Source: Macrostomum lignano (taxonomy: Eukaryota). Taken from it: a stretch of 64,000 nucleotides of DNA. The notes below the pieces were generated by a model that was not told the origin of the DNA, ran no database searches, and saw only the letters and a list, made by a program, of their open reading frames with translations. A program made the position numbers and the translations under genes. Position 1 is the stretch's first letter. The number at the start of each line of letters is the position of its first letter. The stretch is from contig NIVC01002705.1 in the NCBI GenBank assembly GCA_002269645.1, positions 1 to 64,000 of the forward strand. Direction: 5' to 3'. Shown piece after piece: positions 5,713 to 59,222 of this stretch.

Positions 5713-7701
5713 CTTACTTTTATAAAGTGTGCTTAAGCGTACAACATAGAAGATTAAATCTAGCAGAGATGGGTGGGTTAAATAAGATGTATAAACTGAA
5801 TTCGGCTAGTGAAAATGCTGGCTCAGCTTGAATAGGCTCCATTGTTATCTGAGTGGTGGCGAGTACAGAGCTGCATGCGATACTCTTGGGTTGAAAGCAT
5901 TTAAGGCTGACTGACTGTACGTGGAGGCACTATAATAGCTCCGACATGAAGATGCACCCCTGTAGAAAAATTTAGCCTGTGCTCTGTGTTAAATTTCCAG
6001 GATTTCTCTCCTTGGTAGCAGCCATCATAGAGACGACGATTTGACCCAGCAGGTGACGCGCCATTTAATTAGCATGGGTGTCAAAGCCAGATGAGCCATG
6101 TTACGCTGATTTATGATTTCGTGGAAAGCGCCGTGGGCACCAGTACAAAGGCCGCTATTGCCAAGGGCTCTAGTCGTAGCCATACAGTATATGGGCGCGG
6201 CCATTACATGTACTACATGTACTACAAGGCAAGTGATAGTATCGATTAGTGATCTATTTAATCATATAGCGATTACATGTATATTTCACACCGATCTGAC
6301 ACTCAGGTACCATATCATAAAGTTAATAAAATGTGCTTGTTTTAAGCGATTTGTTTTTTTCGAATTGCGAAGCGAAAATAATTTATTTACGCGGATGAAC
6401 GTGAAAACACGGCATAAAAGTCTAAACACTTCAAACAAGAAGGCATATAGTTTCAGCTTTTACTGCAAAAAACCAAATCCATGAGCTAAATAAACAAATA
6501 ACAAAATACTGCGAGAAAAATTAACTGTTATTGTACATGTATATATGTATATATTGATTGACAATTGATCACTAACGTAAAGTCGCATCTATAAGCTGCC
6601 TTCTTTAAATGCATTAAGTGGTATGTGAAAGTAGGTTTTATACATGCATGAAAATGCAAGAAAAATGCGAGTTTGAATATATTCCTAACAATTTTTCATA
6701 AAGTGAAGAAAGGATTAAAAACTGGTTGCTTGCATGCAAAAATATAAGCCCGAATGAAAGATGACATCATTGTGACGTTGCTAGTTTAAGTGGTCCCGCA
6801 AAAGGGCCGTTGGACTATAGTTTCCCTTGCAATTTCTCGTTTTAATTTCTCCAATAGTTTATTTTAACGTTTACTTGTAGTAGCGTGCAAATAATCTGTA
6901 TCAACTGCTAATTCACTGTGTATTTGGTAGGCCTTGCGCTCGTCTGTGAATTTTGGCACGATCGATAATTTCAAGTTCTCTCGCCAGCCAATGAAAAATC
7001 TCCGCGTGTATTTTGCTAGCCCTCTGCGCTCTTTATTAACCCCCGCCTGGCGGCGGGCTCCTCACTTCTGCCCCTTCTCCTGCCTTCTGTCTGCCTCCTT
7101 ATCTCTCGCCACGGCTCCTGTGTCTGGGCCAGCCTGTTTACACTGCCTGCCACTGTCTGCCACGGCTAACGCCAATCTCACCACTACGCATCCGCCATTG
7201 CTGTGCTCATCGCCGTTACTCACCACGTTGCATCGCCTTGCATCACTCGCCTACCACTCGACTACAATTTCTAATTCACCTTCAATTCAAAACCATTATT
7301 GCAGCCGCCAGTGTCCCAAAAGCGCAATAAGTTCTGTATTAACATTAACCAATTTGAATATTGATCTCAAGAATAAAACAACTACGGCAGTTACCTGCCT
7401 AGTACGCCAAGTGCTCCGCTACACAATCCGCTTCTCAAGACTTGACTCGATTCATTTTGGGACTACGACTTACGACAACTCGTAAAACGGCCCTTCTAAG
7501 GGTCATAGCCTCTACGCCAATAACGTGAAAATCATCAAAATGCAAACAAATTTTTGTTGAAAAGAATAAAAGCCCAATATTGATCATTTGAGTTTTTTAT
7601 TAATGTTGTGAGTTCTACAAGTCCTCCAGTATTGCATTGTATTGTCCGTCCAGCAGTATTGTATTGATTAAAGCATTATTATCTGTGGAAAGGGGTTTTT
7701 C

Positions 7702-10700
7702 GGGTCTGTATAAAAGCTGGCACTGGCACATTGGACACATTGGACACCCCTTTTTATAACAAAATTAAATATGAAAATGCAGAATAAACTTGCGGAGTTA
7801 CTTTAAAAATTTTTTTTTAAAATGATAATAATAAAAATGACATCCTTGCTTTCGTGATAGATGATTTGTTAAATATTCTTTGTATTATCGTTTTCTGTAC
7901 ATGTTTAATTTGGCATTCGATTTTTTAAAATAATCGCACATGCAAAAACTGCAGCTTGCAATGCTATTACACTGTGATTTTACTACCCCGAAGGTTCTGT
8001 ACTACAGGCGTACCGATTTAATGCTAAATATGCGCAAAAATGATCAAACTAATAGTCAGAACTTAATTTTCCATAAAATGAAGCATTCTGCTCTTATCAA
8101 AAAACCACAACTTATTCTGTTAGGATTACTTCATGAAGAACGAACTTTGGATATTCCAAATTGCAAGTATTTCTATATTAAAAAAGTTAATACATTGGCA
8201 GATTATTTGATGAAAAAATTGCACCCAAAAAGTTTTTTTTTACTTTGTAAGATGATGATTAAATAAATAATTTCCAAGCTTATTCTTTTATTAGTTCAAT
8301 TACTTTTTGTATGATTTCAACCAACAAAAAAGGAATAGCTACTCAGTGAGAGTTCAAATTACAGTCTCTTCTTTATATACAATCCTTTTTATTTTAAGAA
8401 AACCTTTAATATTATGAATAATTTGCCAAGTCATGATATTTAAGAAATTGTGCTACTCATTTAAATTATGAGGTAAAAAATGCAAGCATATAAGTAAAAA
8501 ATCTACCTTACAGACCAGGAAGTCTTTTTACTGAAAAGTTATATGTGATGCTTTGAATAAACAACATATAAACCATCTTCACATAACATTTATTGTCATT
8601 ATTTATTTCAGACCTAAATCCTTTAGCACATAAATATTCTGCATGTATGTTGCAGGGTATACTTCCTTCTTCTAAAATCCTATGAATGCCACAAAGTTTT
8701 AATAGGCAAATTTATTAGTATTGTTTATATTAATATTTCTATATTTATGAGAAATTTTCCAATAAGAACAAGTGCCCAATCAGTAAAACACTATTTTTTA
8801 ATTCTAATGTCCAAAATTATGGCATTCTAAGGGACCAAGTGATAGGTTTTAAGCTACTATTAGCACCTACATGATTTATTTATTTAATACCTACACATTC
8901 CTTAATGTCTATAGTTTGCCTAATTGCCTAATTGCTAACCCTAATTCTAGCCTTCTTGGCTTACAAGTCTGAGTCTTCACAGCATATTATTCAATTCAAG
9001 CCCTACTAATTTTATTAGCCTCTCTTAATTTTATAAAATAATAATTTTCTTTAGTGTAACTGCTCCAAAAATTTAAATTGTGCATTGCTTTTCATTTTTA
9101 TATAATCTGTTTGCCCAAGTTGAGAATTATTTAATACAAAGGTATCTATTCTAGTTCTATTAGTTTCCATTCTAGAGGCAGCATAGTCTTAAAAGAAATC
9201 AAGAGTTCACAATCTACATGTATAGAAATATATGAATATTAGTATGAACTCATACATTGTTGCAAAGAGCTAGATCCATATAGTGGGTATGTCCACTTTT
9301 GGTAAGATTTTGAAAAATACTACATTTTATTATCTATAGATGGAAAACATCTGATTAAAATTCTTCCCTCCTAATGTCAATCTCCATCTGCCACATTTTC
9401 TTCGCTGTCTTGCAAGGTTTTCTCCACAGGAAAGTAGAATTTTTTTATAAAACTTTTAGGAAATTTAAAGGTAGCCTAAGACATTCTCCGTAGTGAGTTT
9501 AGGGTGGGTGCAAAATTTGGTGTCATTTGGTTGAGTGGTTTGGGAGTCCATAGCAATCAAAATTGTACACACACAGACAGACACATAGAGTTTTGATTTT
9601 TATAGGTAAAGATAATGAAGAAATAAATGAGACAAAAACTTCAAAAACGTAAAAAAACTTTAAATTCTTCAGCCAAATGACATCATTTTGAAGCGGCAGC
9701 ACCAGGACCTGAAAATCTTGGCAACGATTTGGCTCCCGTAAGTTTAAAAAGCTAAATTGTTACTAGTTACTGAAAAAAGCAGCTGATTAGATTAAAAGCT
9801 GTCGTTGTGCATCGCAGTGAAGCGGCCAACAAGGGGCACTACATCTGCTACACATTCGCATCAAACGGTACTGTGTACGAAGTAGACGACTTCCATGTTC
9901 GCTTCATCCCAGCGGGGATTCCCTTGGATTCTCTGTCGCGAGACTCTGTCATTGTGATGTATGCATCTAGTGAATCCAGGGAACCTTAGTTGTGCAGCTC
10001 AAGCAACATTGAAGAATAACATTCAAAGCTTACATGCAGAGTTTTAACTTTGTGCTAAATCTGCACAGAGCTAGAATTTTTTAATTGAAGTCACCACAGT
10101 TTGCGCGTCCATTTTTTATTTTAAGCCAACAGCCAGGGACACTAAGAACTAGGAGAAGTTGCTCATATAGTTATTAGAGGATGCTTTTTCTTGTAGCCTG
10201 TTAGTAGGCTAATACAAGGACAGACCCAAGAAGGCCATAACCTTCATGAAGCAGGGGGAGTTGCAGCAGTCAATTTCTAGCCTAATGACCCCCTTTCCCA
10301 TGTATAACAATACAAATCTGTGCAATTTTTTTAGAGTGACAAAGTTCACTTGGTGTGCCGAAACACCACTCGCACCATTACAGCCCTGTCTATAATTTCT
10401 TTGTGCTAATTGGTTGACCACTTTCAATAATTTTCTTGGGTCAAGAGTGTGATATATGCATATTGCAGCATGAATTTTTAAAAGAATCCCTAGTTTTATA
10501 CAAGGAATCATATATATTTATAAAAAGTTAGCTCTTAGAGTAGAGATAAAGTACATAAGACTATTAATAGCAAATTTTCATACAATTGCTTATGGTAATG
10601 ATTTTTATTGTTATAAAGTTACAAATGAATAAAAAATTACATTGCATTTAAACTATACTTTATGAGTTGTAAGCCATTCAACTCAGAGTGCACTTCAATT

Positions 10701-11734
10701 GCTTTAATATACATTGCTAGATGTTATTTAGCATTTCTTTGTTATTTATCATTTAATTCATTGTATTGTTTAATTGCTAATTTCATTTGCTCATTGCTCA
10801 GGTGCAATATTTATTACTTTTTTATTAATGCCAATGTTTGTTATACTTTTTCTCCCCATTTTTAGTGTTTTTGGTATTCTTTTGTCAAATTTTAATTTTT
10901 TAGCTGTATCTATCTTTACGAAAAATTGTACCTGTAAATTTATGGTTTTTTGCTTACAATGGTACTGTACTAAATTGTATTTATTTCCTTGTTAGATTCT
11001 CTAAATTGATAAAGTAATGCACTGCTTTATTATCATGCATATTGAATATTAAGGATAGTTAGTATTCCTTCCTTGAAAAAGATTCTAGAGTTGGATTCTA
11101 TTTGATAAGAGAATAAATAATTTATTGAGTTTAAATGTTTTTAAAACATTAATTAATTGCACTTTGATGGAAATCATAACTTAAAAAATTATTCGTTTTT
11201 TATTTAAGACACGGGGGATTTTAAAAGTCCATATTAACAACAAATCAAACATTAACATTATGGGAGAGAGAGAGAGAAGGATTACATTCACATTCACCAT
11301 TGCTGTTGATTTATGGAAAGGCAGTAAACAAGCAAGAGCAGCTGCAAATTGTCAAATATGCCATGTCCGGCTATAAAATTCTGCAACTAGTCTGCTGCTA
11401 ACTTTTTCCAACGTTTAATGAGGACAAGAAACGGCATTTAATGTTTCTATGTTTTCTGTAAGTGCACCACCTAGGTAAATGAAAATGACGTACCGAAAGT
11501 AGTTCGACAATAAAGCAAGATAAGAAATGAATTTAAATGTAGAATAAAACTTGTTGATACTACCAATCTCATGGTTGTTAAAAGTATATGAAAAAGTGCA
11601 ATTATAAATAAATGTTTACATTTTCATCCGAAGACAAAGTTTATTTATACAAGCAAAACAACGATCAAAACTCGATTTTTGTTAATATAAGGGGTGTCCA
11701 ATGTGGCAATGGTGCCCTGGTTTTATACAGACCC
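7702..11734. mobile_element. Mutator-like (MULE) DNA transposon, probably non-autonomous, ~4.0 kb
   Basis: Imperfect ~60-bp TIRs starting GGGTCTGTATAAAA (7702) and ending TTTTATACAGACCC (11734). Exact 10-bp direct repeat GGGGTTTTTC on both sides (7692-7701, 11735-11744). AT-rich interior with no transposase recognised. Confidence 0.8.
9673..9989 (+). pseudogene. Ubiquitin-specific protease (peptidase C19) C-terminal/His-box fragment inside the MULE (exons 9673-9737, 9791-9989)
   Basis: Spliced translation PNDIILKRQHQDLKILATIWLP|LKAVVVHRSEAANKGHYICY...VYEVDDFHV...VIVMY resembles the USP motifs LPxxLxIxLKR..KI...P, LxAVVxHxG...GHY, DD and final Y. No Cys box was found. Confidence 0.55.
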
Positions 11735-12841
11735 GGGGTTTTTCAATACGCAATAACATTTGTTTTAGTTATAACAAAAATACTAGTTTGATAATGGGGA
11801 AACCACAGTAAAAATTTCAATAACAGTGCAATGCAGATAAATATTACACTTTTTTTCACAACGATCTTTTAGACCTCCTGTAAAACTAATGACAACAAGT
11901 AACCATGAAGGTTTACTATTTTGAAATCCAAGTAAAGTCGTAATCGAGGTCAACGAAGTCTTATCATATTTATAGATTGCAGTTTTTCTCACTTCCTAAT
12001 TCTTCTTATTTCTTAAAAAAAGAATATTGTTACTTCTTACAAAAACATCAATTTAAGTATTGAAAGTTTGCCTTTAATCGATTTAAATCATATTTAACTC
12101 ATATTTTTTACTGCAACAGTTTATCTATGTACAACAAAACAATTGATATAATTCAAAGAACCAGAATTAACTTTAACTAATTTTAATTATACTGTCACAA
12201 AAAATTGTGCTCAGAAAATTTTTATTGGCTTTTAAAGTCGAATACAGAAGGGACCAGACTATCTAAAATTTACTTTCGTTCCAAAGCATTTACTAAAATT
12301 CTCGTGTTAATTACAAAAGATTCCAACACCAATATTTTGTTTTTAAAAATTAAGAGAAAATAAATTAAGAGAAATATTTTTAAAATCTAATTTTTCCTTT
12401 TCAATTCCATAGATTTTTGCCTTGAAACATAAAATTTAGATATAATAAGCAGGTAATACAAAAATCATATTATTTGACAAATTTCAATTTAACTAAGTAC
12501 ATATAATGCATAATTTTTTAATGTCTTCCTTGGAGCTGCGAGAAAAAGTAGCTCATCCATAATAAATCTATTTAATCTAGATAATTACTATGGATAACTA
12601 AAATTTCCTTATAGGATCTAAGTAGGTATCTGATAAACAGAATTTTAATAGCTAATACAAATAACAAACATTCGAACTGTGCAATCCACTCGTGAACCTA
12701 GTAAAAATACATATTTTAGACTTATAAAATTGGAAAACCATTTGAACCTTTATTTCCATCGTAGATTGGCAAACTATTTTAAAATTCTTTAATTCCTCTG
12801 TTTTACCATCTAAAAATCAATAACAGCTACTAAACCTTTGC

Positions 12842-15800
12842 ATGAATTCACGAGAGCCCTCCGATGTGGGAGGGGCCGAACGGATCGGCTCAGCTCACAG
12901 CCGCCACTCGCGGCCAGTGCGGTCAGCCAAGCGGCCTGCGCTGCACAAACGGCTGACCAAACACTCGGAAATGATAGGAGCGCTCACCGAGTTTGACCCA
13001 TTAGCAGTCTACCTAAAAGTCATGAAAGGCCGTCTGGACGACCTGCCGATCATGAACAGCCGCGTCGTGCGCATCTTCCTGTCGTCCACCTTCTCGGACA
13101 TGGGAACGGAGCGCAACTACCTCATGCAGCACGTCAATCCAAGGCTGAAAAAGTTCTGCCGCGACTCCTTCGGACTCGAGTTTCAAACCATCGACATGCG
13201 ATGGGGAGTCGGTGACGAGGTACAGCTCGACCACCAGGGTCCGTACATGTGCTACCAAGAGATCGACAACTCGCTCATCATGTCAGCCGGCCCCTACTTC
13301 ATCTGTCTGCTGGGTCAGCGCTATGGCAACCAGCCGCCTGCAGCCCTTGTCGAGGTCGACGTTTTCAACAACATCGTGGAAGCGTTGAAGGAGGACGGAC
13401 GCGACGTCTCGTGTCTACACGAGTGGTACACGATCGATGAGAACAACAAGCCACCAATCTGCGTGCTGAGACCGATTGCAACTCTAGCAGAGGCGGTAAG
13501 TGTGATTTTTAACGATTAATGCAGCGCTTGTTTTTCAGAGTTTGCAAAAGGATAAATTTAATAACCTCTAATCTCGTAATTCATTGTTCCAGGCGGACAA
13601 GGAGCTCTTGAAAGCTGCTCGACAGCGGTGGGAAGCTGTCCAAGACTCCATCATCGGACTCATGAAGAGAGGTGCCGAGTTGTGTCTTCAAAAGACTTTG
13701 ATCTCGCACGCGACAATGAAGAAGTTCACGGCGTCTGTCACCGAGATGGAGGTGATCAGCGGAATATTGTCAAAACCTCCGCAAAAGTTGGCTCAGGCTC
13801 TCGCATTCGTGAGAGAATTCTCTGATCTGGAGTCTCAGCGCGACTTCTCTCGAGGAAAGATGTTCAAGTTCATCGACCTGACCGACTCTTTGAACGAAGA
13901 TGGCGAGGCAGTAAAGGTTCTTGATGAAGCTGTGAACGCGATGGTCAAGGAGTTGAACAGACACGTTCTGACTCGAATGGCGGGATCCAATTCCTTCACT
14001 TACTCACTAAAATGGACCAATGACGCTGAGGGTGTGGGCATGAGTAGCCACAAAGACTATCTGGAAAAGTTTGGCAGCGACTACTGCGATAATGTGAAGC
14101 GCCTCGTGGCCGAATCCGTGCGGGAGAGCATGCGGCTCCGATCGGACGACCTCTACTCGGAGGTGCTGCAGCACTCGACTGCATGCGTCAACTACGTGAA
14201 GAAGTTCCAGGGTCGGCAAGAGATCATCGACAAGGTGAAAGCTTATGTGCAAGCGAGCAACACAACGGAGCCTCTGGTGGTGTACGGCGACTCGGGCAGC
14301 GGCAAGACCTCTCTACTTGGCAAGGCCGCCAGTCTGGTGCGAAGCTGGTTGCCAGAGTCCGATTCCAAAGATGCCATCGTGCTGTTGCGATTCCTCGGCA
14401 CCAGTCCCGGTACGTCGAGCATTCGACAGACACTCAAGTATCTGTGCCGTCAGCTCGCTGTGTTCGGCAACGAGGACGACCAGGAAAAGTGCGAGTCACT
14501 CGACGACTTCAAGGAGATCTTGAACACCTTCTACTCCATGCTCGAACGCATGGGCCAGTTCAGGAGAATCTTGGTGTTCCTTGACAGTGTTGATCAGCTG
14601 GACAGCTCTGACGGTGCCTACCATCTGACGTGGGTGCGGACGCCATTGCCTGCCAACGTGAAGATGGTTGTGTCCACTCTGCCCAACATGTTCGATTTGC
14701 TGAAGACATTCAAAGGGAAGCTGCCTAACCCAGACATCTACGTGGAGGTGACGCCACTGGAGACCAGTCTGTGCACCAGCATTTTGTCGGCTCTGCTCAG
14801 CGAACAAGGTCGCACTCTGAACGAGCAGCAATGGGCTCTGGTCGAGCAGGCATTCTCCAAGTGCTCACTGCCAATCTATGTTCACCTGCTGTACCACGAG
14901 GTTCTGAGATGGCGCTCTTACCAACAGGTAGATGAGTCGTCTCTGCGCTACACCGTTCGTCAGGCAATATTTCAGCTGTTCGAGAAACTCGAGTTGAAGC
15001 ACGGCAGGCTTTTTGTAAGTATTTCGTTCGTGTTAGTTACTGTAGCCCAGGCTAGTGAGAATATTCCACAACTATCCACTTATCTACAGTGATTGGATTA
15101 TTCTAGTCAGAATGACTCTCTCTGCTCATTTGTTTTTCCAGACCTCTCACGCCCTGGCATTTATCACTGCATCGAGAAACGGACTGTCAGAGTCGGAGCT
15201 GGAGGATCTGCTCAGTCTGGATGACGCCGTCCTCATTGACGTGTTTCAGCATCACCTGCCGCCCTTCATCCGCATCCCGCCGATCTGCTGGGCTCGACTG
15301 CGTCACGACATTGGCTCTTACCTGGTCGAGAGAGAGGCGGACAACATCCGGGTAGTGTTCTGGTACCACCGACAGTTCATCGAGGTGGCTCAGGAGTACT
15401 TCTTGTCGGACGAAAAGACCAGACGGGACATTCACTCTATCATGGCAGACTACTTCTTGGGTCTGTGGAGCGGCAGGAGAAAGAAGTTCGTGTACCCAGC
15501 CTATCTGCGCAAGAAGCTCGTAAGTGATGAGCACTGAAATTGATCTGTTCTCTGAACCGACTTACTGAGCCGTTCATGCATTCGTTCTCACTCCAGAACC
15601 TGCCCGAGTTCTCAATGGAGGACCGAGCCGTTCCCGAGCAGCCATTCGTGCTCCGCAAAGATGAGGACGGCACTGCTCAGTACAACCTGCGAAAGCTGAA
15701 CGAGCTGCCGTGGCACCTCATCAAGTCCGGTCGAGTGAACGAGTTCTACGACTACATTGTGTTTGACTACGACTTCATGTTCAACAAGCTGAAGGGCACG

Positions 15801-18800
15801 TCTCGGTACCTGCTGCTGAGAGACCTCGACCTCCCGCAGAAGCTCGGTGTCGAGTACATCAAAGAGGCCGAGCTCGTGTACAATGCAATCCGACTCTCCG
15901 CTCAGAGTCTCGTATACGACCCTGTCAATCTGAGCGTTGATCTCATCGGTCGGCTCATCATGTACGAGAAGGACTGTCCTCGAGTGAAGCTGCTGCTCAA
16001 CCAGTGTCGCCAGTCGAAACAGGCTCTCAGCAACTGCTGCCTCATCCCGAAGGTGCAGTGCTTCGACTCCGGGTCTGGAGTTCTCTACTCCAGCTTTGAT
16101 CTCGGACTCGGAATGGGACTGGTCATGCCCAACGGTCAGCTGGTGTCCTTCTCACTCATCAACAACGAAGTCACCTGGTACGACATCGAGGGAAATGAGA
16201 TCAAACGGTTCAGCTCCGACTACAACCTGTTCCTCAGCATGAAGTACATGTCGACTGGATACATCCCAGACGACTGCGTAATGCACGTGCTATCGATGCG
16301 CTCGAAGAATGCCGGTGTCACCGAGGACGACATGCAGGCGCTTGTCCTTAACATGGGTCGGAAGAAGATCCAAGAGGAGATAGAAGAATACGAAGCGTGC
16401 AACAAGGATGTGCCGCAAGAGCTGCGAGACATGATGGAATCGCTCAACGCTGGAGAGATTCCAGACAGCATCATGGAGAAGCTGGACGTAGACGGGATGA
16501 TGAAGAAGATGATATCTGGAGAGGAAGAGGCGCAGAAGTCGCAAGATCTCGTTCGAGTCGACTTCATGAACGGCAGGGTGACGAAACTGATGACTCTGGA
16601 CCCATCATGGAGTGTGTCATCTGATGACGTAGAATATGTGACAAAGGACTATGTGCTTTGTTGCAAGGGAAAGAGTGACTCAACGGGAACAAGCACTCTT
16701 AGACTGCTGTCACTCGGAGAGAAGAAGTTTGTTGCGCTTTATGAAGAAAATACAAGCGGAACGTCAAGAATCGGCACCCAAAACCTCGATAGCAAAAACA
16801 ACTTGCTGTGCTTTGGGATCGAGGCAGGCAGCAACCACTCAACATTGCTCGTGTTCATGAACTTAAACACGAAAGAGATCGTTCGAGGTTCTTTGCCTGA
16901 CATCTTCAAGTCAGCTGACAAAGCGGAACTTGAGTCCATGTGGCGCCACTCACCACTAAAGCAACCTGACAATAAGAAAGAAGAAAAGACACCGGATGAA
17001 AATGACGAGAAGACAAAAGCGGACGAAAGTCCGGCAGCGAGTGAAGCCGACTTGAAATCGAAGACCATCGAGTTACTTCAGCAAGCTGAAGAAGTTTCTG
17101 CTAGCTCCTGTCTCATTGATCATGAGGGAAACATCGTTGCTATTGTAAACGCAACAAAATCTGCTGAAGAAGGCAGTGGGAAGCAAGACAGTACTTTTTT
17201 CGTTACATTCGCCATCTCTGACAGCCTCAAGCCCATTTGTATTGTGGACCTTCAGGAAAGCTTCGATATAAAGTACAGTCAGAATTTCGTAAGCCCAAGT
17301 CGTCGTCGAATGACTTTCCTTCTGAAGAGAAAGTCCAGAGTATACGGTCAAACAAGCGTTCTTCGCGGTCTGTTGTATGACTGTGACGAAAAGCGCGCTG
17401 TTGGGATGACAATATCACCTGAGCAAGACAAGTTCAAAAAGGCTGCATCAAGTTTTGGTGACGGAACGCAGGCTAAATTTACCGAAGACGAGCGATTGCT
17501 AGTTACGTCTGGTTCTAAGGTGCTTCTACTTGTGTGGTCCGTGCAAACTGGCGAACTTTTGGAAGGAATCTCCCTGGGAACGGCCGAAAGCTTTCTTTGT
17601 GGCCAGCCGAAAGGCACGGACTTCTTCACTATCTGCCATTTTCCTGACGAGTCTGCTGGCGACTCTGACGAGCGAATGTTCATCATGACTAAGGTGTACA
17701 ATTTGAAACACTTCACCGACAAGCTTAGTCACCACAGCGAAGAGGATGCACTGCTTCCAATGTATACTCAGTTCAAGCCGTGTAAGAATGCGACAGCGCT
17801 CACCGATTGTCACACGGTTGACATTCGCACTAATGAGGCTCTGATTTCATTGAACACTCGGACACTGGTGGTTAAGAAGTCCTCTTCACGCGACTCGAAA
17901 GAAGACGATCAGGTAGAGACGCTCAGGCTGTCGGATAAACCTCCCATTATTGAGCTTCGCCGCGATCCGAAAGCTCCTTTTTCTGTTGGCATCTCAGTGA
18001 TCAGCAACCAGCTGGTAGAAAAAGTTTTTGGTAGCACATCAAAGGAGGAACTCCTTCAAAGTCGTAAGTCCAAATCAGTTGGAGGGGTCGAGTTCAAATT
18101 TCACGTCGACGCAGAAAACGAATCGAGTGACAAAGAAATGGAACTACAGGCTTCACTGCGTATCTCAAAGAACAACATCTTCGCCCAGACTCCGATTTCG
18201 CATGGATCAAATTCTCTAGAATTAGGATTTCTTGATGAATCTCGACAGTGCTTAATTTCACTTAAGTGCCACGTTCAGTACAGCTTCAAAGAGAGTTTTG
18301 TCTCACTTGTCCATCTCCCCACAATGGAGAGCGTGGTATTCAAGTTTACGAAAAATAATCATCTAGACAGCGGCGATGATAGCTCAGACAGGCTCTCACA
18401 AGATTTTATCGAGCGGTTTTCAGAGGTCATTTATGGCGGCCTAAAGGCGACATCTAAGAAGAAAGGCAGTAAAAAGCAAAAGAGGAAGAAAGACAAGAAG
18501 GAAGAGACGAAGGAGCCTTCCGAAAACCAGGAGACCAAGGAAGAGAATTCAACCGAAACCAAAGGCGATGAAGAAGAGCTGACGGAAGCGGCTAAGAAAG
18601 CGAAGGAAGAAAAGTTTCTAAAAAAGCGATTGAATAATCGCAATGACCTTGTCGACATTCAGTTCCTGCCAGAGAAGTGCACGCTCAACCTGGCCTTCAG
18701 CCAACACCTCAAAGCGTCCGAGGAGATTCGCGTCGGCGTCGGAGTTCCTCCGATTTGGCTCGGCGCGGTTGTGCGCCTCGACTACAGCGACGTGGAGAAA

Positions 18801-20200
18801 GGAACTCCGACCAGCGAGATGCAGTTCCAGCACTCCATCGGCAAAGTGTTCGACATGGGACCCGCAGTGGCCTTCCTCCACGACAACCAGCACCTGGTCA
18901 ACTACAAGCTTCAAATTGTGGACTACATGAAAGGCGAAGTGATCCGCTGTCTCAGCCAGGACGAGGACTTGTACTTTGTTAGACTGCAGGCCACGCCAGA
19001 CTGCAGCCTGCTTGTTAGCCAGGTGTACTTTCCCGCCTACGAGGTGGAGTTCGCCGTATTCGATGACGAATCCATGAACAATTCGGACATGTTCGCAATT
19101 GTTCCGCCTCGAGGCTTGCAGGTGAGATTAGCAACGATTGTTATTGGGAATGGCAAATCTTTTAATGCTTACGCTTATAAGAATCCGATCTAAAGATGCC
19201 TTTTCTCAATGACTGCGTTTAATTTCTGCACTCCAGGTCTATGTAATCAGTGATGGACGCCGCGTTGCAAACTACCTGTTTGAGTCGGATCCTTTCGGAC
19301 TCTGCTTGGTTGGGGAAGATGGTCGGGACCTGCTGGTGCTGACGCATAACGCACCAATCATGCTGTTTGAGCTTCACGACCCGCAACCGCTAGTTGCTGC
19401 TGATGGAGCTGCCCAGATGCACTCGATGAAGGCGATTGATGAAAAGGCGAATACAGACTCGAGTGTCGGTTCGCCGGCGAGAGCACCTGGTCCAAGACCG
19501 GAATACCTGGACATGCTGAGTGAGATTCAAGGGGTTGTTGATTACAACTTAATACGTGGTAGTTAATAGGCGTTATTGCCCTAGATGTATTCCGGAAGGC
19601 TTAATTGAAGTTGGGATTCTTCGCTGAGGGAAGTTACTGATCTTATTTCATCCCAGTGGGATTTTTCAGAATCCTCAAAATTGTGCCTTCAGATTCCTTC
19701 CCACAGTGGTGTCTTCAGGGTCCTTCTCAGAGAATTGGTATCTTCAGGTCCTTCCCACATTGGTGTCCTCAAAGTCATTTCCACAGTGCTGTGTTCAGAG
19801 TCCTCCCTTCCCAAATTGGTGTCCTCAAAGTCCTTCCCACAATGATTTTTTCCGGTTCCTTCTCTCAGAGTATTGTCTTCAGAGTCCTGCTCAGAAAGCG
19901 GTGTCTTCAGCCTCCTGAGAGAGCGGTGTCTTCAGGGTCCTTCCCGAGAGTGGTGTATTCAGATCCTTCTCAGAGTGTGGTGTCTTCAGAGTCCTTTCTA
20001 TAGTGGTGTCTTTAGATTCCTTACCCTACGGAACTCGTTGAGCACTACAAAATTCCCCCCATTTCTTCATTCCAGAGCCAGCACTGGCCAGCTCAATGGC
20101 CGAGGTAGCGAACGCGAGGCCCGTGGACCCGATCGAGTTCCTGGCGCAGTGCCTGCTGCGCTACAAGGCGCAGTGCGACAGCCAGCAGCCAGATATCTGA
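12842..20200 (+). CDS. NWD-type STAND NTPase copy 1 (DUF4062-like + NACHT + degenerate propeller + Dpy-30-like tail), ~2128 aa; exons 12842-13495, 13593-15014, 15142-15519, 15597-19121, 19237-19519, 20076-20200
   Basis: [17 protein letters not shown]...IDMRWGV N-terminal domain as in NWD1/NWD2/TEP1; Walker [10 protein letters not shown]; Walker [12 protein letters not shown]. All splice junctions are GT-AG and keep the frame. Without the last splice the frame stops at 19566. Confidence 0.88.
19690..20030. repeat. Degenerate ~21-bp minisatellite (ggtgtcttcagagtccttc-like) in the last NWD intron; also at ~35865-36050
   Basis: Recurrent ggtgtcttcag/agtccttccc motifs. Confidence 0.7.
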
Positions 20201-21119: not shown

Positions 21120-21414
21120 ATGGACATGTTCCCCAACTGATGTACATGTTCCTGAGCTGTTGGACATGTCCCCAACTGTTGGACATGCTCCCAAACTGTT
21201 GGACATGTTCCCAAACTGATGTACATGTTCCTGAGCTGTTGGACATGTCCCCAACTGTTGGACATGCTCCCAAACTGTTGGACATGCTCCCCAACTGTTG
21301 GACATGTTCCCCAACTGATGTACATGTTCCTGAGCTGTTGGACATGTCCCCAACTGTTGGACATGCTCCCAAACTGTTGGACATGCTCCCCAACTGTTGG
21401 ACATGTTCCCAAAC
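21120..21414. repeat. 20-bp minisatellite variant array (catgttcccaaactgttgga family)
   Basis: Tandem 19-20-bp units with a recurring variant unit (aactgatgtacatgttcctgagctg). Confidence 0.92.
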
Positions 21415-21765
21415 GCGAGCCTGCTGGGTGACTTGAGGAAGCGGGTGTTGGCCGACACCATATCCTGCCTCTCCAGGAAGTCCTGCAGCGCCTGGGTGTT
21501 GCCGTTCTCGCGGGGCGTCACAAACAGCGACCGCTCGGACCTCCGAGTACGACCACCGTGTCGCGCCGAGCAGTCTCCTCCACGCGCGCAGAGAGCTGCT
21601 CGAAGAAGTCCTGAGCCTCATCTGGGCGGGTGGCAGGTGGCGCGTACACGCAGAACAGGCGAACGTTCCGGCCGCGAAGCCGGACGTCTACCCAAAGCAT
21701 CCGGGGGACAGGGAAGAGCAGCGATAGCTCTGCTGCAGTCTTGGGCCGATCAGTGCTCCAACTCC
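21415..21765 (-). mobile_element. Fragment of a non-LTR retrotransposon APE endonuclease (RTE-like), frameshifted
   Basis: Across frames the minus strand gives GVGALIG..., RMLWVDVRLRGRNVRLFCVYAPP..., VVVLG(D), ENGNTQALQDFLERQDMVSANTRF, matching the APE motifs GVG, YAP, LGDxNA and NxNG..L..NT.F. Confidence 0.75.
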
Positions 21766-21775
21766 TAACGTCCTA

Positions 21776-22222
21776 ATAACAGTTCCCAAACTGTTGGACA
21801 TGTTCCCAAACTGTTGGACATGTTCCCAAACTGTTGGACATGTTCCCAAACTGTTGGACATGTTCCCAAACTGTTGGACATGTTCCCAAACTGTTGGACA
21901 TGTTCCCAAACTGTTGGACATGTTCCCAAACTGTTGGACATGTTCCCAAACTGTTGGACATGTTCCCAAACTGTTGGACATGTTCCCAAACTGTTGGACA
22001 TGTTCCCAAACTGTTGGACATGTTCTTAAACTGTTGGACATGTTCCCAAACTGTTGGACATGTTCCCAAACTGTTGGACATGTTCCCAAACTGTTAGACA
22101 TGTTCCCAAACTGTTGGACATGTTCTTAAACTGTTGGACATGTTCCCAAACTGTTAGACATGTTCCCAAACTGTTAGACATGTTCCCAAACTGTTAGACA
22201 TGTTCCCAAACTGTTGAAAATG
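21776..22222. repeat. 20-bp minisatellite (catgttcccaaactgttgga), about 22 copies
   Basis: Near-perfect tandem array. Confidence 0.97.
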
Positions 22223-22555
22223 TCCTCTCACAGCTCGTAAAGATGTCCTTAATTCTGTTTATAGTTCTCCCCATTGGTAAAGATGCTCCTTAAGTGCCCA
22301 TTGGACAAGTCATTAGACAAGTGCACGTTATTCAGCAGCTCTTTTCCTGGCAAGACCACCAGTATTGTCAAATAAAAGACTAAACGCGGAGAAAACAGTT
22401 TGAAATTGAAAAAGAAACGAATGGAGCGTTTCGGTCTCTGCTTTGAGCCGTCTATAGTTTTACTTCAGATGACGCTTTGCATCCAAATTTACCCAACTCA
22501 GCCAGACTTTTTTAGTTTTCATGTTTTAAACAAAATTATGCGCTGGGTGCGCGGC

Positions 22556-25500
22556 TCAGGCAGTCGCGGTCTCGCGGTAGAGACTGCACAGCCGGTCGCA
22601 CTGGGCAGGGGCACCAGCGCGCTTGCCAGTTTGCCCGGACTGAGGTTTAGCTGTCCAGGAAACCGGACGCAGGCAGTCAGGCCCAGCATCATGGATTCCG
22701 GGTACAACTGCAGCCTCCGGAGGTTGAGAATAGTATCGCCAGTGTAGACATAGCGGAGGAGTTCCCAGCGGTTTTCAGTGGCCTAATCGGACTCTGCAAA
22801 GGGGCGGTGCACAAGCCGAGAGTAAATGCAGCTGTGCTACCAGTGCAGCAGCCGCTGCGCCGCCTTCCCCTCGCAAAGCAACAGAAAATAGGCAATGAAC
22901 TTGACCGCAAGGAGAACTTGACCGCATTGAACGAATAAACTCCAGCCCATGGATATCCAACATGGTTGTCGCAAACAAGAAAGACGGCAACATTCGAATC
23001 TGCATCGACGTGCGAGAGCTGAATAAGTCGCTTGTAATCGATCGACATCCGATGCCTCAGCTGGACGAGATTTCGGCAAAGATCAAGGCAGCAAGTGGCC
23101 GCGTATTTTCAAAGATCGATCTCAAAGCTGGCTACATGCAGTTGGATGAGGCATCGCGTGACTTGACAGCATTCATCACGCACCAGGGGTTGTATCGGTA
23201 TTGCAGAGTGCCTTTCGGCTTAGCGTCAGCGCCAGCAGCCTTCCAAAGGATGTTGGACGACTTAGTAGCCGGACTTCACGGGGTCGAACATATTCTGGAC
23301 GATTTTTTTGTTTTCGGAGCAAACATGACTGAACATGATTCAAGACTGCGAGCGCTATTAGGGCGTATGAACGACGCTGGCCTAACGGCCAATAAGGACA
23401 AATGCCTGCTACGCAAGACGGAGGTAGAATTTTTCGGCTTCATCTTCTCAGCCGACGGTATGCGAACTTCAGAGTCCCAGACCAAGGCATTCAGCCAGTT
23501 GCGCTCACCGTCTAACCGGAATTGGAGCTGCAGGCGTTCCTAGGATCTGCAAACTACCTGATACGCTTTGTACCCAATTTTGCTGAAGTCACAGCGCCTC
23601 TGAGGGCCCTACTGAAGGGGGATGCGGAGTTCGAGTGGTCGACGGACTGCGAAAGAGCGTTCCAAGAGCTAAAAGCAGCAATCTGTAATCCACCAATCCT
23701 GGCGCACTTTGACCCAGAGGCTGAGACGATTGTCACCAGCGACGCCAGTGCGGAGTCTCTCGGTGCAAACCTGTCCCAGATCCAAGACGGCGTCGAGCGT
23801 CCAATCGCCTTTGCCGCCCGAGCCTTGACCGACACCGAGAAGCGATACGCTGAAAATGAGCGGGAGGCATTGGCCAGTCTGTGGGCCATGGAGAAGTGGC
23901 ACTACTACCTATATGGGCGTCACTTTGAGCTGCGAACAGACCATCAAGCGGTACGTCAACTACTGTTGGGACCCAGCGGCACGGGACATCGGCCGCTGCG
24001 CATCCATGGCTGGTGTGACAGATTTAAACAGTACGATTTCCACGTAAAATATCCGCCAGGCAATCGGAACTTCGTGGCCGACATGTTGTCAATGTGGAGC
24101 TGTGGGTCGGACATGAATATCGTACAGCTACCGGACACTGCGATGCCTCGAGTCCGAGTAGTAACACCTACCCAGCTAGCGACAGCCACGGCCGAGGACA
24201 CGGTTCTGCGCGAGGTGATTAAGCGAGTGACTAGCGGCAACTGGGGCTCAACGAAGGACACAGAGTTGCACCCGTTCTTCAAAGTCAGAGAGCACCTCAG
24301 CGTTTGGCAGGATGGCACATTGCCTGGCTTTCCAAGAGCGAGCAGTTATTCCACATCAGCTGCGGCGTAACCTACTGGAATCGGCGCACACCGGACATCC
24401 GGGTGTGGTTCGCACTAAGCAGCAGCTCCGCGAGTTTGCCTGGTGGCCAAAGATGGACTTCGACGTCGAAACGTTTGTCAGAAACTGCAGTGCCTGCGAG
24501 ACCGCAGAAAAGAATTTCAAATTGCGACCGGCTCCTCTGCAGCCTCTGCGGTGGCCAGATAGGCCGTGGACACAGATCGCCATCGACATCGTGGGTGAGC
24601 TACAGGCAGCACCAGCATCGTCACGATTCCTTTTGGTCATTACGGATCTGCATAGTAAATGGCCGGAAGTATTTGCAACGTTAAACATCACCACCGAGAC
24701 GATCTGCAAAGTGTTACGCAGCCTGTTCGCTCGCTGGGGTCTCTGTAAGACGGTGCTCACGGACAACGGACCGCAGTTCGGCAATGCGCTCACGGGGTTC
24801 CTGCGGGAGCGCGGCATCCAGCATCAGAAGACCAGCCCGTACCGTCCGAGCACGAATGGCCAGACGGAGAGACTCAACCGGACTCTGGTAGACAGCATAC
24901 GAGCGGCCAGGGCAGAGAATGTCCCAATGAAAGACGCGCTGTTGCAATTCCTTGTGACCTACCGCAGTACGCCGCACGCCCTGACTGGCAAGAGTCCAGC
25001 GGAGCTGATGCTAAGAAGACGTTGGCGCACTGCACTGTCTCTACTGGCCCGTTTAAGGACACCACGGCGGCACAACCAGATTTCGCCCAGCGAATTTAGG
25101 AGAGACAGCAGCGAACGGCAGCTTATACCGACCGGCGGCGGGGGGTGCGACCACCAACATTGTGCGCCGGTGACTGGGTTCGAGTGCATCGTCCAGTTCG
25201 AAAGGGAAAGCTGGGGACGCGGCTTTCTGGACCACTACAGATCGTCAAGACAACGAACACCGTGTGTAGACTAACGGACGGCAGCACCTGGAATCAGCAG
25301 GCGCTTGTACCAACGTCTTTGCGGCCGAATTCTGAGCCACCAGGGCCAAACGAGCTTGACCCCCCTCGTGGACATTCAAAGGCAACAACCTGCACAATGC
25401 GGCGGAGAGACCAACGTTCAAATACTAGGACCAGCCTCGGGACCTGCGAATCCACCGCTGAGACGTTCGAACCGTCAGTGGCGACCGGTGCAACGTTACG

Positions 25501-25825: not shown

Positions 25826-28049
25826 GCAGGCTTTGGTTAAGCTGTCAGTGTTACCTAAGTCAGTAGTCTAGCGGTACAGTGAGGCCTTGAGCGAGCTTGG
25901 TTGATCGATGCACTGCTGCTGCCCACTTAGCCTGGCTGACTGAATAAGCCTGGCCAAGCCAAGCATGATGATTTGAACCACGATGAGGCCCCTAGCGCTT
26001 ATGAATATATTTTTCATAAAAGTGAAGAAAGAGTAAAAAACTTGGCTGTTTTTTATGTATGCAATAATTATAAACCTGCACGAAAGGACAATCAGATGCG
26101 ATCAAAGTTTTGTTGAAAAGAATACAAGCCTAATCTTGATAAAGCTGTTTTGATCATGTTGTGTCTAAAAGTCCGTCCAGTAGTATATGTGTGACAGTGT
26201 AATTCGTAGAAAGCATATGTATCGTATTTCGATTATCTCGCATGCACACCGTACCACTTGTATTCTTTCTTTCATTGTAACAACAATCTATACGTATTAT
26301 TATTGCGCTTACGTTACTGTTGAATACTTTGTTTTTGTAGCCTCGTATGTATTTATTTCATTAATTGTATTTCATGCATTGTGTATTATTTCTCGTAAAG
26401 TAGTTCCATGCATCTATGTACATGTATTGACGTTATGGTATTCTGGCACGATACTCTTATTTTATCGATTAATTTGTACATGTACATTGCGCCTGAGGGG
26501 GGTTTGTCTGAGGGGGTTTGTCTGAGGGGGGTATAAAATAAACAAGTTTGGATTAAGCTTGTTATCTTTGTTTACTCACCAATTACAAACATACACTTGC
26601 AGTCAGCGGCCGCTCTCTCCCTTCGCTTCTTCGCTTCGCTTCTCGCTCAAGCTTGCGGGCCCCTTAGCTGTCTGGCCTCCTTGCCATCAACTCTTCCGCC
26701 GCCTACCTCGGCCCACCAATTAATTCATAAACTGATTCCGATCTTTGCAATTGCAATTTGCAATTTGCAAGGCCTAACAATTCAAAGTAACGCTAAGGGT
26801 GAAAGCGGCTTGCCGATCTGCTAAAACTAAATCGAGAACTATCCAATTAACCGCTACACAAAACCGTCTTCCCGCCTTATGTCGTCACGTATGGATGAAT
26901 TTGTCGTCACGTATGGATGAATATGTCGTCATTATGTCGTCAAATATGCATTTTTATTATCTAGTGGCAACAGGATTTTTTTATGAGCATTAACATTAGT
27001 ACTAGTTAAAACAAAAGTACGAGTTTTTAATAACAAAATCACAATATCGATAAAGTTCAACGGCAAAACGAGACAAAGGAAAATATTTTACTTTTCTTCA
27101 AACCATCTCTCAGACTTTTAAAACTCATGACAACAAGTAACCATGAAGATTTACTATTTTGAAATCAAAGTAAAGTCGTTAGGGTTGACCAACAAAGTCT
27201 CTCAAATTTGTAGCTTGTATTTTTTCCTAATTCCTTATTTTTCAAATACCCTCGATGTAAATACATTAAAAGTTTGTCTTCAATTGATCTTAGTCGGTTT
27301 TCCTTATATTTTTACTAAAACAGTTTATCTATACACATATTATTATACACATATTATATTATTGTCATCATTCTAAGAACCAGAATTAATTTTGACTTTA
27401 AAGTTACAAATCAAAAATTTTGCTCAGAAATGTTATTTCCTCAGTCGAATATACGAAGCACGAATCTAAATATTTGTTGTACCAAAAAAATTCACTAAAA
27501 TTATATTGTGTCTACAACAAAGGACTCCAAAACCAATATTTTATGATTAGCAATTTAAAGCAAATAAAAAAATCAAAATTGTCTTTTAACTTGCATAGAT
27601 ATGTGCTTTGTAAAATCAAATTGTAATATAATAAGTAGATAATACAAAAATTATATTATTAGCAAAATTTTCAATTTTACTATGAGCTAATAGTAAAATA
27701 TAAGACATGAATTTTTAAATGACTTCCTTTGAGCTACGAGAAAGATAAATAAATCTAGCTAATCCACAATAAATTTATTTAATCTAGATAATTAATCTAG
27801 TTAACTAAAATTTTCATACAGGATTTTGGTAGGTATTTAATGAATCGAATTTAGCAGCCATTATAAGTAACAAAAATTGGAACTGTCCAATCAACTCATG
27901 AATCTAATAGAAAATACATTTTTAAGACTTTTAAAATAAGAACCATATGAAATGAACCTTGATGGAAAACACAGATTTGAGGACCATTTTACCATTTCTT
28001 TGAGATTCCTCTCTTTTATCGCCTAGTATCCAACATCCCATTTACTAAA

Positions 28050-31000
28050 ATGGTCAAAACTAAGCAGGTGCTTTTCACAATGAAAACAAGAAAATACTAG
28101 AAAATCAATAACAGCTACTAAACCTGTTCCAGAATTCACGAGAGCCCTCCGATGTGGGAGGGGCCAAACGGATCGGCTCAGCTCACAGCCGCCACTCGCG
28201 GCCAGTGCGGTCAGCCAAGCGGCCAGCTCTGCTAAAACGGCTGAACAAATACTCGGAGTTTATAGGAGCGCTCACCGAGTTTGACCCATTAGCAGTCTAC
28301 CTAAAAGTCATGAAAGGCCGTCTGGACGACCTGCCGATCATGAACAGCCGCGTCGTGCGCATCTTCCTGTCGTCCACCTTCTCGGACATGGGAACGGAGC
28401 GCAACTACCTCATGCAGCACGTCAATCCAAGGCTGAAAAAGTTCTGCCGTGACTCCTTCGGACTCGAGTTTCAAACCATCGACATGCGATGGGGAGTCGG
28501 TGACGAGGTACAGCTCGACCACCAGGGTCCGTACATGTGCTACCAAGAGATCGACAACTCGCTCATCATGTCAGCCGGCCCCTACTTCATCTGTCTGCTG
28601 GGTCAGCGCTATGGCAACCAGACGCCTGCAGCCCTTGTCGAGGTCGACGTTTTCAACAACATCGTGGAAGCATTGAAGGAGGACGGACGCGACGTCTCGT
28701 GTCTACACGAGTGGTACACGATCGACGAGAACAACAAGCCACCAATCTGCGTGCTGAGACCTATTGCAACTCTAGCAGAGGCAGTAAGTGTGGTTTTTAA
28801 CGATTAATGCAGCGCTTGTTTTTCAGAGTTTGCAACAGGATAAATTTAATAACCTCAAATTTCGTAATTCATTGTTCCAGGCGGACAAGGAGCTCTTGAA
28901 AGCTGCTCGACAGCGGTGGGAAGCTGTCCAAGACTCCATCATCGGACTCATGAAGAGAGGTGCCGAGTTGTGTCTTCAAAAGACTTTGATCTCGCACGCG
29001 ACAATGAAGAAGTTCACGGCCTCTGTCACCGAGATGGAGGTGATCAGCGGAATATTGTCAAAACCTCCGCAAAAGTTGGCTCAGGCTCTCGCATTCGTGA
29101 GAGAATTCTCTGATCTGGAGTCTCAGCGCGACTTCTCTCGAGGAAAGATGTTCAAGTTCATTGACCTGACCGACTCTGTGAACGAAGATGGCGAGGCAGT
29201 AAAGGTTCTTGATGAAGCTGTGAACGCGATGGTCAAGGAGTTGAACAGACACGTTCTGACTCGAATGGCGGGATCCAATTCCTTCACTTACTCACTAAAA
29301 TGGACCAATGACGCTGAGGGTGTGGGCATGAGTAGCCACAAAGACTATCTGGAAAAGTTTGGCCGCGACTACTGCGATAATTTGAAGCGCCTCGTGGCCG
29401 AATCCGTGCGGGAGAGCATGCGACTCCGATCCGATGACCTCTACTTAGAGGTGCTGCAGCACTCGACTGCATGCGTCAACAACGTGAAGAAGTTCCAGGG
29501 TCGGCAAGAGATCATCGACAAGGTGAAGGCTTATGTGCAAGCGAGCAACACAACGGAGCCTCTGGTGGTGTACGGCGACTCGGGCAGCGGCAAGACCTCT
29601 CTTCTTGGCAAGGCCGCCAGTCTGGTGCGAAGCTGGTTGCCAGAGTCCGATTCCAAAGATGCCATCGTGCTGTTGCGATTCCTCGGCACCAGTCCCGGTA
29701 CGTCGAGCATTCGACAGACACTCAAGTACCTGTGCCGTCAGCTCGCTGTGTTCGGCAACGAGGACGACCAGGAAAAGTGCGAGTCACTCGACGACTTCAA
29801 GGAGATCTTGAACACCTTCTACTCCATGCTCGAACGCATGGGCCAGTTCAGGAGAATCTTGGTGTTCCTTGACAGTGTTGATCAGTGGACAGCTCTGACG
29901 GTGCCTACCATCTGACGTGGGTGCGGACGCCATTGCCTGCCAACGTGAAGATGGTTGTGTCCACTCTGCCCAACATGTTCGACTTGCTGAAGACATTCAA
30001 AGGGAAGCTGCCGAACCCAGACTTCTACGTGGAGGTGACGCCACTGGAGACCAGTCTGTGCACCAGCATTTTGTCGGCTCTGCTCAGCGAACAAGGTCGC
30101 ACTCTGAACGAGCAGCAATGGGCTCTGGTTGAGCAGGCATTCTCCAAGTGCTCACTGCCAATCTATGTTCACCTGCTGTACCACGAGGTTCTGAGATGGC
30201 GCTCTTACCAACAGGTAGATGAGTCGTCTCTGCGCTACACCGTTCGTCAGGCAATATTTCAGCTGTTCGAGAAACTCGAGTTGAAGCACGGCAGGCTTTT
30301 TGTAAGTACTTCGTTCGTGTTAGTTACTGTAGCCCAGGCTAGTGAGAATATTCCACAACTATCCACTTATCTACAGTGATTGGATTATTCTAGTCAGAAT
30401 GACTCTCTCTGCTCATTTGTTTTTCCAGACCTCTCACGCCTTGGCATTCATCACTGCATCGAGAAACGGACTGTCAGAGTCGGAGCTGGAGGATCTGCTC
30501 AGTCTGGATGACGCCGTCCTCATTGACGTGTTTCAGCATCACCTGCCGCCCTTCATCCGCATCCCGCCGATCTGCTGGGCTCGACTGCGTCACGACATTG
30601 GCTCTTACCTGGTCGAGAGAGAGGCGGACAACATCCGGGTTGTGTTCTGGTACCACCGACAGTTCATCGAGGTGGCTCAGGAGTACTTCTTGTCGGACGA
30701 AAAGACCAGACGGGACATTCACTCCATCATGGCAGACTACTTCTTGGGTCTGTGGAGCGGCAGGAGAAAGAAGTTCGTGTACCCAGCCTATCTGCGCAAG
30801 AAGCTCGTAAGTGATGAGCGCTGCAGTTGATTTGTTCTTTGAACCGCCTTCAATGCGTTCTCACTGCTCCCCTCCAGAACCTGCCCGAGTTCTCAATGGA
30901 GGACCGAGCCGTTCCCGAGCAGCCATTCGTGCTCCGCAAAGATGAGGACGGCACTGCTCAGTACAACCTGCGAAAGCTGAACGAGCTGCCGTGGCACCTC

Positions 31001-49699: not shown

Positions 49700-49737
49700 A
49701 GCTTAGACTGCACCGCGTGTGAGTTTTTCTGCAGTGT

Positions 49738-58600: not shown

Positions 58601-59222
58601 TGGCTGGTTGCCATAGCGCTGACCCAGCAGACAGATGAAGTAGGGGCCGGCAGACATGATGAGCGAGTTGTCGATCTCTTGGTAGCACATGTACGGACCC
58701 TGGTGGTCGAGCTGTACCTCGTCACCGACTCCCCATCGCATGTCGATGGTTTGAAACTCGAGTCCGAAGGAGTCACGGCAGAACTTTTTCAGCCTTGGAT
58801 TGACGTGCTGCATGAGGTAGTTGCGCTCCGTTCCCATGTCCGAGAAGGTGGACGACAGGAAGATGCGCACGACGCGGCTGTTCATGATCGGCAGGTCGTC
58901 CAGACGGCCTTTCAGTACATGTCGGTACAGAATAGAGCTAGATGGTCCTTGTTTACCAACTTGTTTTTCTTTGGCCGAATGAAATGGTTTTAAAAGCCAT
59001 TTTCCTTTTTTCGAAGCCTCTGAACATACAATTTCAGAACCTTTCGATGTGCGTGACGATTTACTTGTACTAGATGATGAATCTGAAGATGCACTTGTTG
59101 AAGAGCTGGTATCAGACAGCACAATGGCATCTATTGGGCTGGCTGTCTAGAGTGGGGGATTATTTTGGTAGTTATACATGTATGCACACTTTGCAGCTAT
59201 ATCATTTCGATATACTAACCAT
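52618..59222 (-). CDS. NWD-type STAND NTPase copy 3 (inverted, chimeric); exons 59222-59220 (candidate ATG-only), 59146-58442, 58344-56923, 56810-56433, 56361-52982, 52878-52618; 23-bp duplication frameshifts exon 5
   Basis: Same motifs and intron positions as copy 1. It has a unique Ser-rich N-terminus, a diverged central segment (~55230-53480) and a unique tail ending RRCCTCL-stop. Confidence 0.85.

Follow-up and report, generated by a model that had tools for sequence, protein, structure and literature searches.

A spliced-leader end in place of a trans-splice acceptor in the Macrostomum lignano assembly Mlig_3_7, most likely an overwrite by RNA-seq reads during polishing

How does the 3' end of a spliced leader (SL) come to stand in a genome assembly at the very position where paralogous genes carry a splice acceptor? 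The question is raised by a 64,000-nucleotide (nt) stretch of the flatworm Macrostomum lignano (assembly GCA_002269645.1, contig NIVC01002705.1, positions 1 to 64,000 of the forward strand; hereafter the window), which contains three copies of an NWD-type NACHT gene. A sequence-only reading of the window had proposed that the acceptor in front of copy 1 was replaced by the 7-mer TTGCATG, that this 7-mer supplies the start codon of the gene and that the SL end was written back into the genome by repair templated by RNA or cDNA. The junction was compared between copies 1 and 2 of the window and three further loci of the same assembly, Mlig_3_7: L001 (NIVC01004056.1), L002 and L003 (both NIVC01002068.1). 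The locus obtained through the copy 1 protein PAA55802.1 (L004) is the window itself, with 13356 of 13356 positions identical. The comparison makes it probable that TTGCATG is a polishing error stemming from RNA-seq reads and not a change in the DNA of the animal.

The junction 7-mer and its paralogues

The features that define the junction are as follows; CDS stands for coding sequence.

12838..12844, plus strand: TTGCATG, with an in-frame ATG at 12842-12844; the last 7 nt of the M. lignano SL, where the paralogues read GTTGCAG or GTTCCAG
12813..12837, plus strand: 3' end of the outron, 25 nt, aaaatcaataacagctactaaacct; the same letters in copy 1, copy 2, L001, L002 and L003
12845..13495, plus strand: copy 1 exon 1 (BOX15_Mlig026330g1, PAA55802.1, annotated as 5'-partial); CDS from 12845 (NSREPS...)
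13593-15014, 15142-15519, 15597-19121, 19237-19519 and 20076-20197, plus strand: copy 1 exons 2-6; five GT..AG introns
28126..28132, plus strand: copy 2 acceptor GTTCCAG, which fits YTNCAG; BOX15_Mlig023669g2, 5'-partial CDS from 28133
28026..28100, plus strand: 75-nt block of copy 2 and L002 that copy 1 lacks; contains ATGGTCAAAACTAAGCAG followed directly by gt (28050-28069)

In copy 1 the sequence aaaatcaataacagctactaaacct (12813-12837) is followed by TTGCATG (12838-12844) and by the exon AATTCACGAGAG from 12845 onward. Copy 2 contains the identical 25 nt (28101-28125), GTTCCAG (28126-28132) and the identical exon from 28133. Direct reading and alignment thus bear out the earlier description of shared flanks with a different 7-mer between them; four of the seven positions differ and no indel is involved. 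The upstream block of copy 2 that copy 1 had been said to lack, then put at about 80 bp, is likewise missing and measures 75 nt (28026-28100). The M. lignano SL is CGGTCTCTTACTGCGAAGACTCAATTTATTGCATG, a 35-nt sequence that ends in ...TTATTGCATG with a 3'-terminal AUG (PMC8629364), and the ending TTGCATG that had been given for Schistosoma and Macrostomum leaders is therefore correct for this species. The match to the SL stops after seven bases: at position -8 relative to the first exon base copy 1 carries a T (12837) and the SL an A.

The published trans-acceptor motif of M. lignano, [T/C]TNCAG, is matched by TTCCAG in copy 2 and TTGCAG in L001, and L002 reads TTCCTG. For copy 1 and L003 the assembly gives TTGCATG, which has no AG and falls outside the motif (the DNA may differ), and the site as written is therefore not trans-spliceable. 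The NCBI proteins of copy 1 (P0017) and copy 2 (P0018) are labeled partial and lack an initial methionine, with CDSs that begin at 12845 and 28133, and a third gene on another contig (P0019, in L003) has a 5'-partial CDS that likewise starts at the first base after the 7-mer. The annotation of Mlig_3_7 (TBONE pipeline) set the 5' limits of transcripts at peaks of SL-trimmed reads (PMC5730564). The gene models and the motif together support the site at 12845 as a genuine SL trans-splice acceptor of the NWD-type NACHT gene, with the reservation that the 5'-end evidence is annotation-based, that reads may map to several paralogues and that other 5'-partial genes in the same loci begin at non-acceptor positions. 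These other genes were rejected as additional trans-splice sites because their starts are not acceptors. The earlier proposal that the acceptors of the NWD copies are trans-splice sites is therefore backed where 5'-partial models begin at the exon and the motif fits, and weakened by the 5'-partial genes that start elsewhere. The locus resembles M. lignano SL trans-splicing in the annotated transcript 5' end and in the acceptors of the paralogues, and departs from it in the text of copy 1 and L003, which is without AG, and in the weak conservation of the N-terminal extension that the SL would add.

The comparison of the five copies also reveals the direction of the change. L001 belongs to the copy 1 type: it is collinear with copy 1 where the upstream sequence has diverged (it is 96% identical to copy 1 there and 76% to copy 2), and its junction reads cct GTTGCAG aattc. 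Over 6.5 kb, L003 and copy 1 share 99.92% identity, and the junction of L003 is TTGCATG. L002 belongs to the copy 2 type (98.5% identical to copy 2) and reads GTTCCTG. The L002 junction lies at 9822-9828 of that locus and has no AG, and a 5-nt deletion (AACAA) is found at ~9940. A stretch of ~4 kb in the window (7701-11735), probably a mobile-element insertion, is missing from both L003 and L001; since the window carries this insertion and L003 does not, the two represent distinct loci or haplotypes. Copy 2 and the copy-1-type homeologue L001 both keep the AG, and the AG acceptor is for this reason, as judged from the aligned copies, ancestral and TTGCATG derived, with the change directed toward the SL bases. 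The claim that the acceptor was replaced in copy 1 is upheld, and its polarity is confirmed by the AG in copy 2 and L001. Between L001 and copy 1 the change amounts to either five substitutions or a 1-nt deletion plus a 1-nt insertion, both of which keep the length, and a MAFFT alignment favors the five substitutions.

As a word, TTGCATG occurs 10 times in the window, where 13.8 occurrences are expected, and so shows no enrichment, yet in a 59.6-kb homeologue alignment the junction is the sole gap-free cluster with at least four differences within 7 nt and clean 12-nt flanks, and this cluster falls exactly on positions -7 to -1 of an annotated gene start. A chance occurrence was therefore rejected, and the 7-mer is, on the evidence of the alignment, the product of an SL-directed process. 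No longer part of the SL and no SL RNA gene was found in the window, where the last 21 nt of the SL are unmatched at up to three mismatches. A search of the window and L001 for other SL-suffix sites in front of open reading frames (ORFs) found none, and the remaining occurrences of TTGCATG are conserved across homeologues.

Probable overwriting of the acceptor during assembly polishing

Mlig_3_7 was assembled with Canu, and its polishing with Pilon drew on RNA-seq reads that STAR had mapped; the sole STAR setting given in the assembly paper is --alignEndsType EndToEnd, and SL trimming is mentioned there solely in connection with the subsequent trans-splice-site mapping (PMC5730564). Pilon makes a per-base pile-up call that is weighted by base quality and mapping quality and ignores a few bases at the read ends (PMC4237348). 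In copy 1, copy 2 and L003 the annotated transcript begins at the first exon base, and SL-bearing reads are therefore expected at these junctions. Untrimmed RNA-seq reads of this kind, aligned end-to-end over the acceptor, would stack their SL portion on the end of the outron. Pilon would down-weight genomic reads that are ambiguous between two 99.92%-identical loci and would swap the last outron bases singly to SL bases wherever SL reads outweigh genomic reads, so that both NIVC01002705.1 and the near-duplicate locus on NIVC01002068.1 would have been overwritten during polishing. We infer that the STAR run for polishing was end-to-end, that at this site the RNA evidence prevailed over the DNA evidence and, hence, that the real DNA contains an AG. 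The sequence before 12845 is then most likely GTTGCAG, as in the homeologue L001.

An overwrite in silico is favored because the swap is same-length, base-wise and graded among the paralogues and because all introns are kept. Seven nt are exchanged for seven nt, the new letters form a contiguous SL suffix from position -1, and the upstream 25 nt as well as the whole exon are unaltered. Such a length-keeping swap is what a pile-up caller yields; a junction with non-homologous SL cDNA need not keep the length. The junctions form a graded series from GTTCCAG (copy 2) through GTTCCTG (L002), in which position -2 alone is changed to the SL base, to TTGCATG (copy 1 and L003). The flip to T at -2 in L002 has a chance of ~0.3% at 1.5% divergence, by an arithmetic that is blind to position. 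The overwrite is complete only in the pair formed by the window and L003, where the 99.92% identity makes the mapping quality of genomic reads low. Conserved length, contiguity from the exon boundary and gradation among paralogues are properties shared with Pilon artefacts that arise from misaligned read ends. TTGCATG equals the YTNCAG consensus with one extra T, which places a TTGCAG acceptor one insertion away from the SL end, and a misalignment of SL reads across such acceptors should therefore be especially easy.

A toy model of the process assumed default settings of at most 10 mismatches and 10 ignored end bases. With these assumed defaults, positions -2, -3 and -4 flip in the first round and positions -5 and -7 in the second, which results in TTGCATG; position -8 is unreachable, and for GTTCCAG the best-supported flip is the one at -2 that is seen in L002. 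The model indicates that an overwrite is feasible and does not amount to proof.

A number of observations weigh against an origin by polishing. The toy model yields 7 nt under just one of several plausible settings, soft-clipping (local mode) would not create the artefact, and the assembly paper gives neither the STAR mode in polishing nor the number of Pilon rounds or the Pilon flank (PMC5730564). Copy 2 is unaltered although its annotated CDS begins at this very site, the edges of the cis introns of copy 1 are free of overwriting, and L002 may owe its change to a simple point mutation or to the conversion of a short tract by a paralogue of the copy 1 type. Among the ~150 kb of Mlig_3_7 examined, no other, unrelated gene showed this defect, exact look-ups of the ORF product for read-derived (Logan) contigs across the junction returned no match, and no published account of SL ends entering an assembly through polishing was found. 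Overwriting of intron edges was considered as an independent signature of RNA polishing and set aside, since the edges are all canonical and thus uninformative. Loci of the ML2 assembly, sought through the UniProt proteins P0003 and P0004, gave no match. The strings that tell the acceptor state from the overwritten state are cctGTTGCAGaat vs. cctTTGCATGaat, and aaacctTTGCATGaattc in genomic DNA at the locus would be the state contrary to polishing; copy 1 can be recognized by its exon variants (AATTCACGAGAGCCCTCC...GGGGCCGAACGG), of which the G at 12878 is copy-1-specific.

Two candidate sites elsewhere in the window were not retained as second cases. At the 5' end of a tubulin-like gene four copies read CGGCATG/CAGGAG and one reads CTGCATG/CAGGAG (here and below a slash marks the boundary), which extends the SL-suffix match from 5 to 6 nt (sites compared: window 25822 and 39698, both minus strand, L001 18052, L002 24625, and L003 22797). 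This one-base difference is within chance given ~1,000 differences between homeologues and was not used. A TTGCATG upstream of copy 3 (59427-59421, minus strand) was rejected as the homeologue L005 is identical, and the site therefore offers no contrast. The copy 3 upstream region (59427-59299, minus strand) reads cttagTTGCATGgcatc... and, 118 nt further on, ATCATG/gtaggt, again the same in L005.

Germline explanations for the 7-mer

The strongest rival to polishing is a germline event in which a double-strand break near the acceptor of the copy 1 ancestor was repaired from a trans-spliced mRNA or its cDNA and the last 7 nt of the SL were copied in; the AG would have been destroyed, a genomic ATG gained and the allele later duplicated (window and L003). 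Such a repair would explain why the 7-mer is SL-directed and derived, why it occurs in two distinct loci or haplotypes and why its ATG leads in frame into an open 225-codon ORF, and it has precedents of a kind: dinoflagellates carry relict SLs from recycled cDNAs (PMC6050394, PMC5585692), and in M. lignano assemblies one trans-spliced gene reportedly has SL sequence at its 5' end, where a sequence at first taken for SL RNA maps (PMC8629364). It accounts poorly for the details of the junction. All five copy 1 introns are kept, just 7 nt of the SL are present and the eighth base is genomic, the exact preservation of length is unexplained at a junction of non-homologous sequences, and the annotated transcript starts after the ATG, like a used trans-splice site that needs an AG. 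The 1-nt SL-ward change in L002 would require a separate event, and the polishing history of the assembly provides a simpler cause. Repair from RNA or cDNA is consequently considered unlikely, and the earlier proposal of an SL end written into the genome gives way to RNA-seq polishing as the likelier cause in view of the retained introns and the base-wise graded pattern.

The relict SLs of dinoflagellates are the only well-documented case of SL sequence written back in vivo (PMC6050394, PMC5585692), and the M. lignano junction shares with them SL-derived letters directly 5' of a coding region. The dinoflagellate relicts are whole or truncated 22-nt SLs, often in series, that mark intron-poor retrocopies (PMC6050394, PMC5585692). 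Copy 1 differs in that only 7 nt are involved, the acceptor is replaced base for base, the outron is intact and the introns are retained. By the marks of an SL-relict retrocopy, copy 1 has no substantial part of the SL and no intron loss, and its outron is collinear with that of L001.

Ordinary small germline mutations would require that an L001-type cctGTTGCAG lost a G and gained a T (cct[-]TTGCA[T]G), with GTTGCATG or TTGCAG as intermediate alleles and a likeness to the SL that arises only since YTNCAG is one T away from TTGCATG. L001 indeed already holds TTGCA, two one-base indels account for the whole difference, the published consensus is [T/C]TNCAG, and one other cluster that resembles compensated indels was found at 6019-6025. 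The comparison of copy 1 with L001 reveals 19 indel events over ~8 kb, none of which lies in exons 1-4 apart from intron sites, and two indels within 7 nt at this very spot that yield an SL suffix and keep the length have a chance of ~1e-5 or less; the MAFFT alignment favors five substitutions instead. This course of events is very improbable. The least credible explanation, an ancestral genomic start codon TTGCATG with a later AG in copy 2 and L001, has nothing in its favor except the ORF that begins at the ATG, and would place the AG in two lineages (copy 2 and L002 with the 75-nt block, L001 without it) even though L001 groups with copy 1 upstream (96% vs. 76%), which makes TTGCATG nested and derived.

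Start codon, gene copies and consequences

As the assembly is written, the 225-codon ORF starts with the ATG at 12842, so that the 7-mer supplies an in-frame start codon as had been claimed; this part of the claim holds for the text only, and the extension of 59 codons that would result is poorly conserved. The 3'-terminal AUG of the flatworm SL, if donated, would share the reading frame of the ORF in four of the five copies: the frame from 12845 is open in copy 1, copy 2, L001 and L003 and is broken by the 5-nt deletion in L002. A conserved methionine (MKGRLDD) lies at 13022-13024, 59 codons downstream. The stretch from the junction to this methionine is variable in 19 of 175 columns (10.9%) as compared with ~2% in the remaining exon 1, and the annotated CDS of L002 begins at the downstream methionine. 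The SL AUG is thus a candidate initiator, with an N-terminal extension that is weakly conserved and, in L002, frameshifted.

The copy 1 product contains DUF4062, a NACHT NTPase and an NWD1-type winged helix (WHD), and the five introns of the gene are canonical and 77-556 nt long. A protein search with exon 4 gave M. lignano proteins as the best matches (91-99% identity), and the sole match to exon 1 was a DUF4062 protein of Adineta vaga. The annotated product of copy 2 ends after 561 amino acids and the copy 2 ORFs (28133-34900) are broken into seven pieces, which may reflect either a decaying paralogue or leftover one-base indel errors of the PacBio assembly. The identity between copies 1 and 2 rises from ~77% to 97.7% at 12810/28097, ~35 nt upstream of the trans-splice site, and holds for more than 5.6 kb across exons and introns. 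This jump points to gene conversion at the DNA level with its 5' edge just inside the outron, and since the high-identity tract runs through introns, the concerted evolution of these copies would be DNA-based. The 75-nt block upstream of the copy 2 acceptor had been thought to hold a micro-exon (MVKTKQ); ATGGTCAAAACTAAGCAG followed by gt is present, and the putative micro-exon would leave a cis intron of 65 nt, but the annotation does not list it. The candidate cis donor CAG/gtgctt lies 65 nt upstream of the acceptor in copy 2 and L002, whereas copy 1 and L001 are without the block.

The acceptor reported earlier for copy 3 is present:

59146..59148, minus strand: copy 3 acceptor ctctag/A; AG at 59148-59147, exon from 59146 downwards

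On the minus strand ctctag/ACAGCC precedes the first large exon of copy 3, and homology with copy 1 begins only at 13023/58914. A possible short exon upstream ends in ...ATCATG/gtaggt, with its ATG at 59303-59301 (minus strand) and in phase 0 to the exon at 59146.

Copies 1 and 2 are separated by an LTR-type (long terminal repeat) retroelement with reverse transcriptase and integrase ORFs (22962-25840), which is also found in L001 and L003. The window contains many tandem-repeat arrays with periods of ~16-42 nt, some of which are common to the downstream regions of copies 1 and 2:

2297-2676, 21120-22225, 37031-37784, 40173-40564 and 41676-42556: tandem-repeat arrays
43789-44061, 45807-46750, 47320-48720, 49733-50161 and 50951-51800: tandem-repeat arrays

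M. lignano is a model of regeneration, and Mlig_3_7, its reference assembly, has ~28,000 annotated trans-splice sites. If the 7-mer is an artefact, the assembly of a trans-splicing organism can lose AG acceptors and acquire false in-frame ATG codons when it is polished with RNA-seq reads that were not trimmed; the 5' ends of expressed genes would be affected, most easily in duplicated regions, and around the annotated sites of Mlig_3_7 errors could enter motif statistics, the calling of start codons and the design of promoters or outrons. If, as appears improbable, the chromosome truly contains TTGCATG, the locus would represent an RNA-templated micro-conversion at an animal trans-splice site by which an SL-dependent start was made genomic, and such a return of SL sequence into a metazoan gene that has introns would be the first of its kind.

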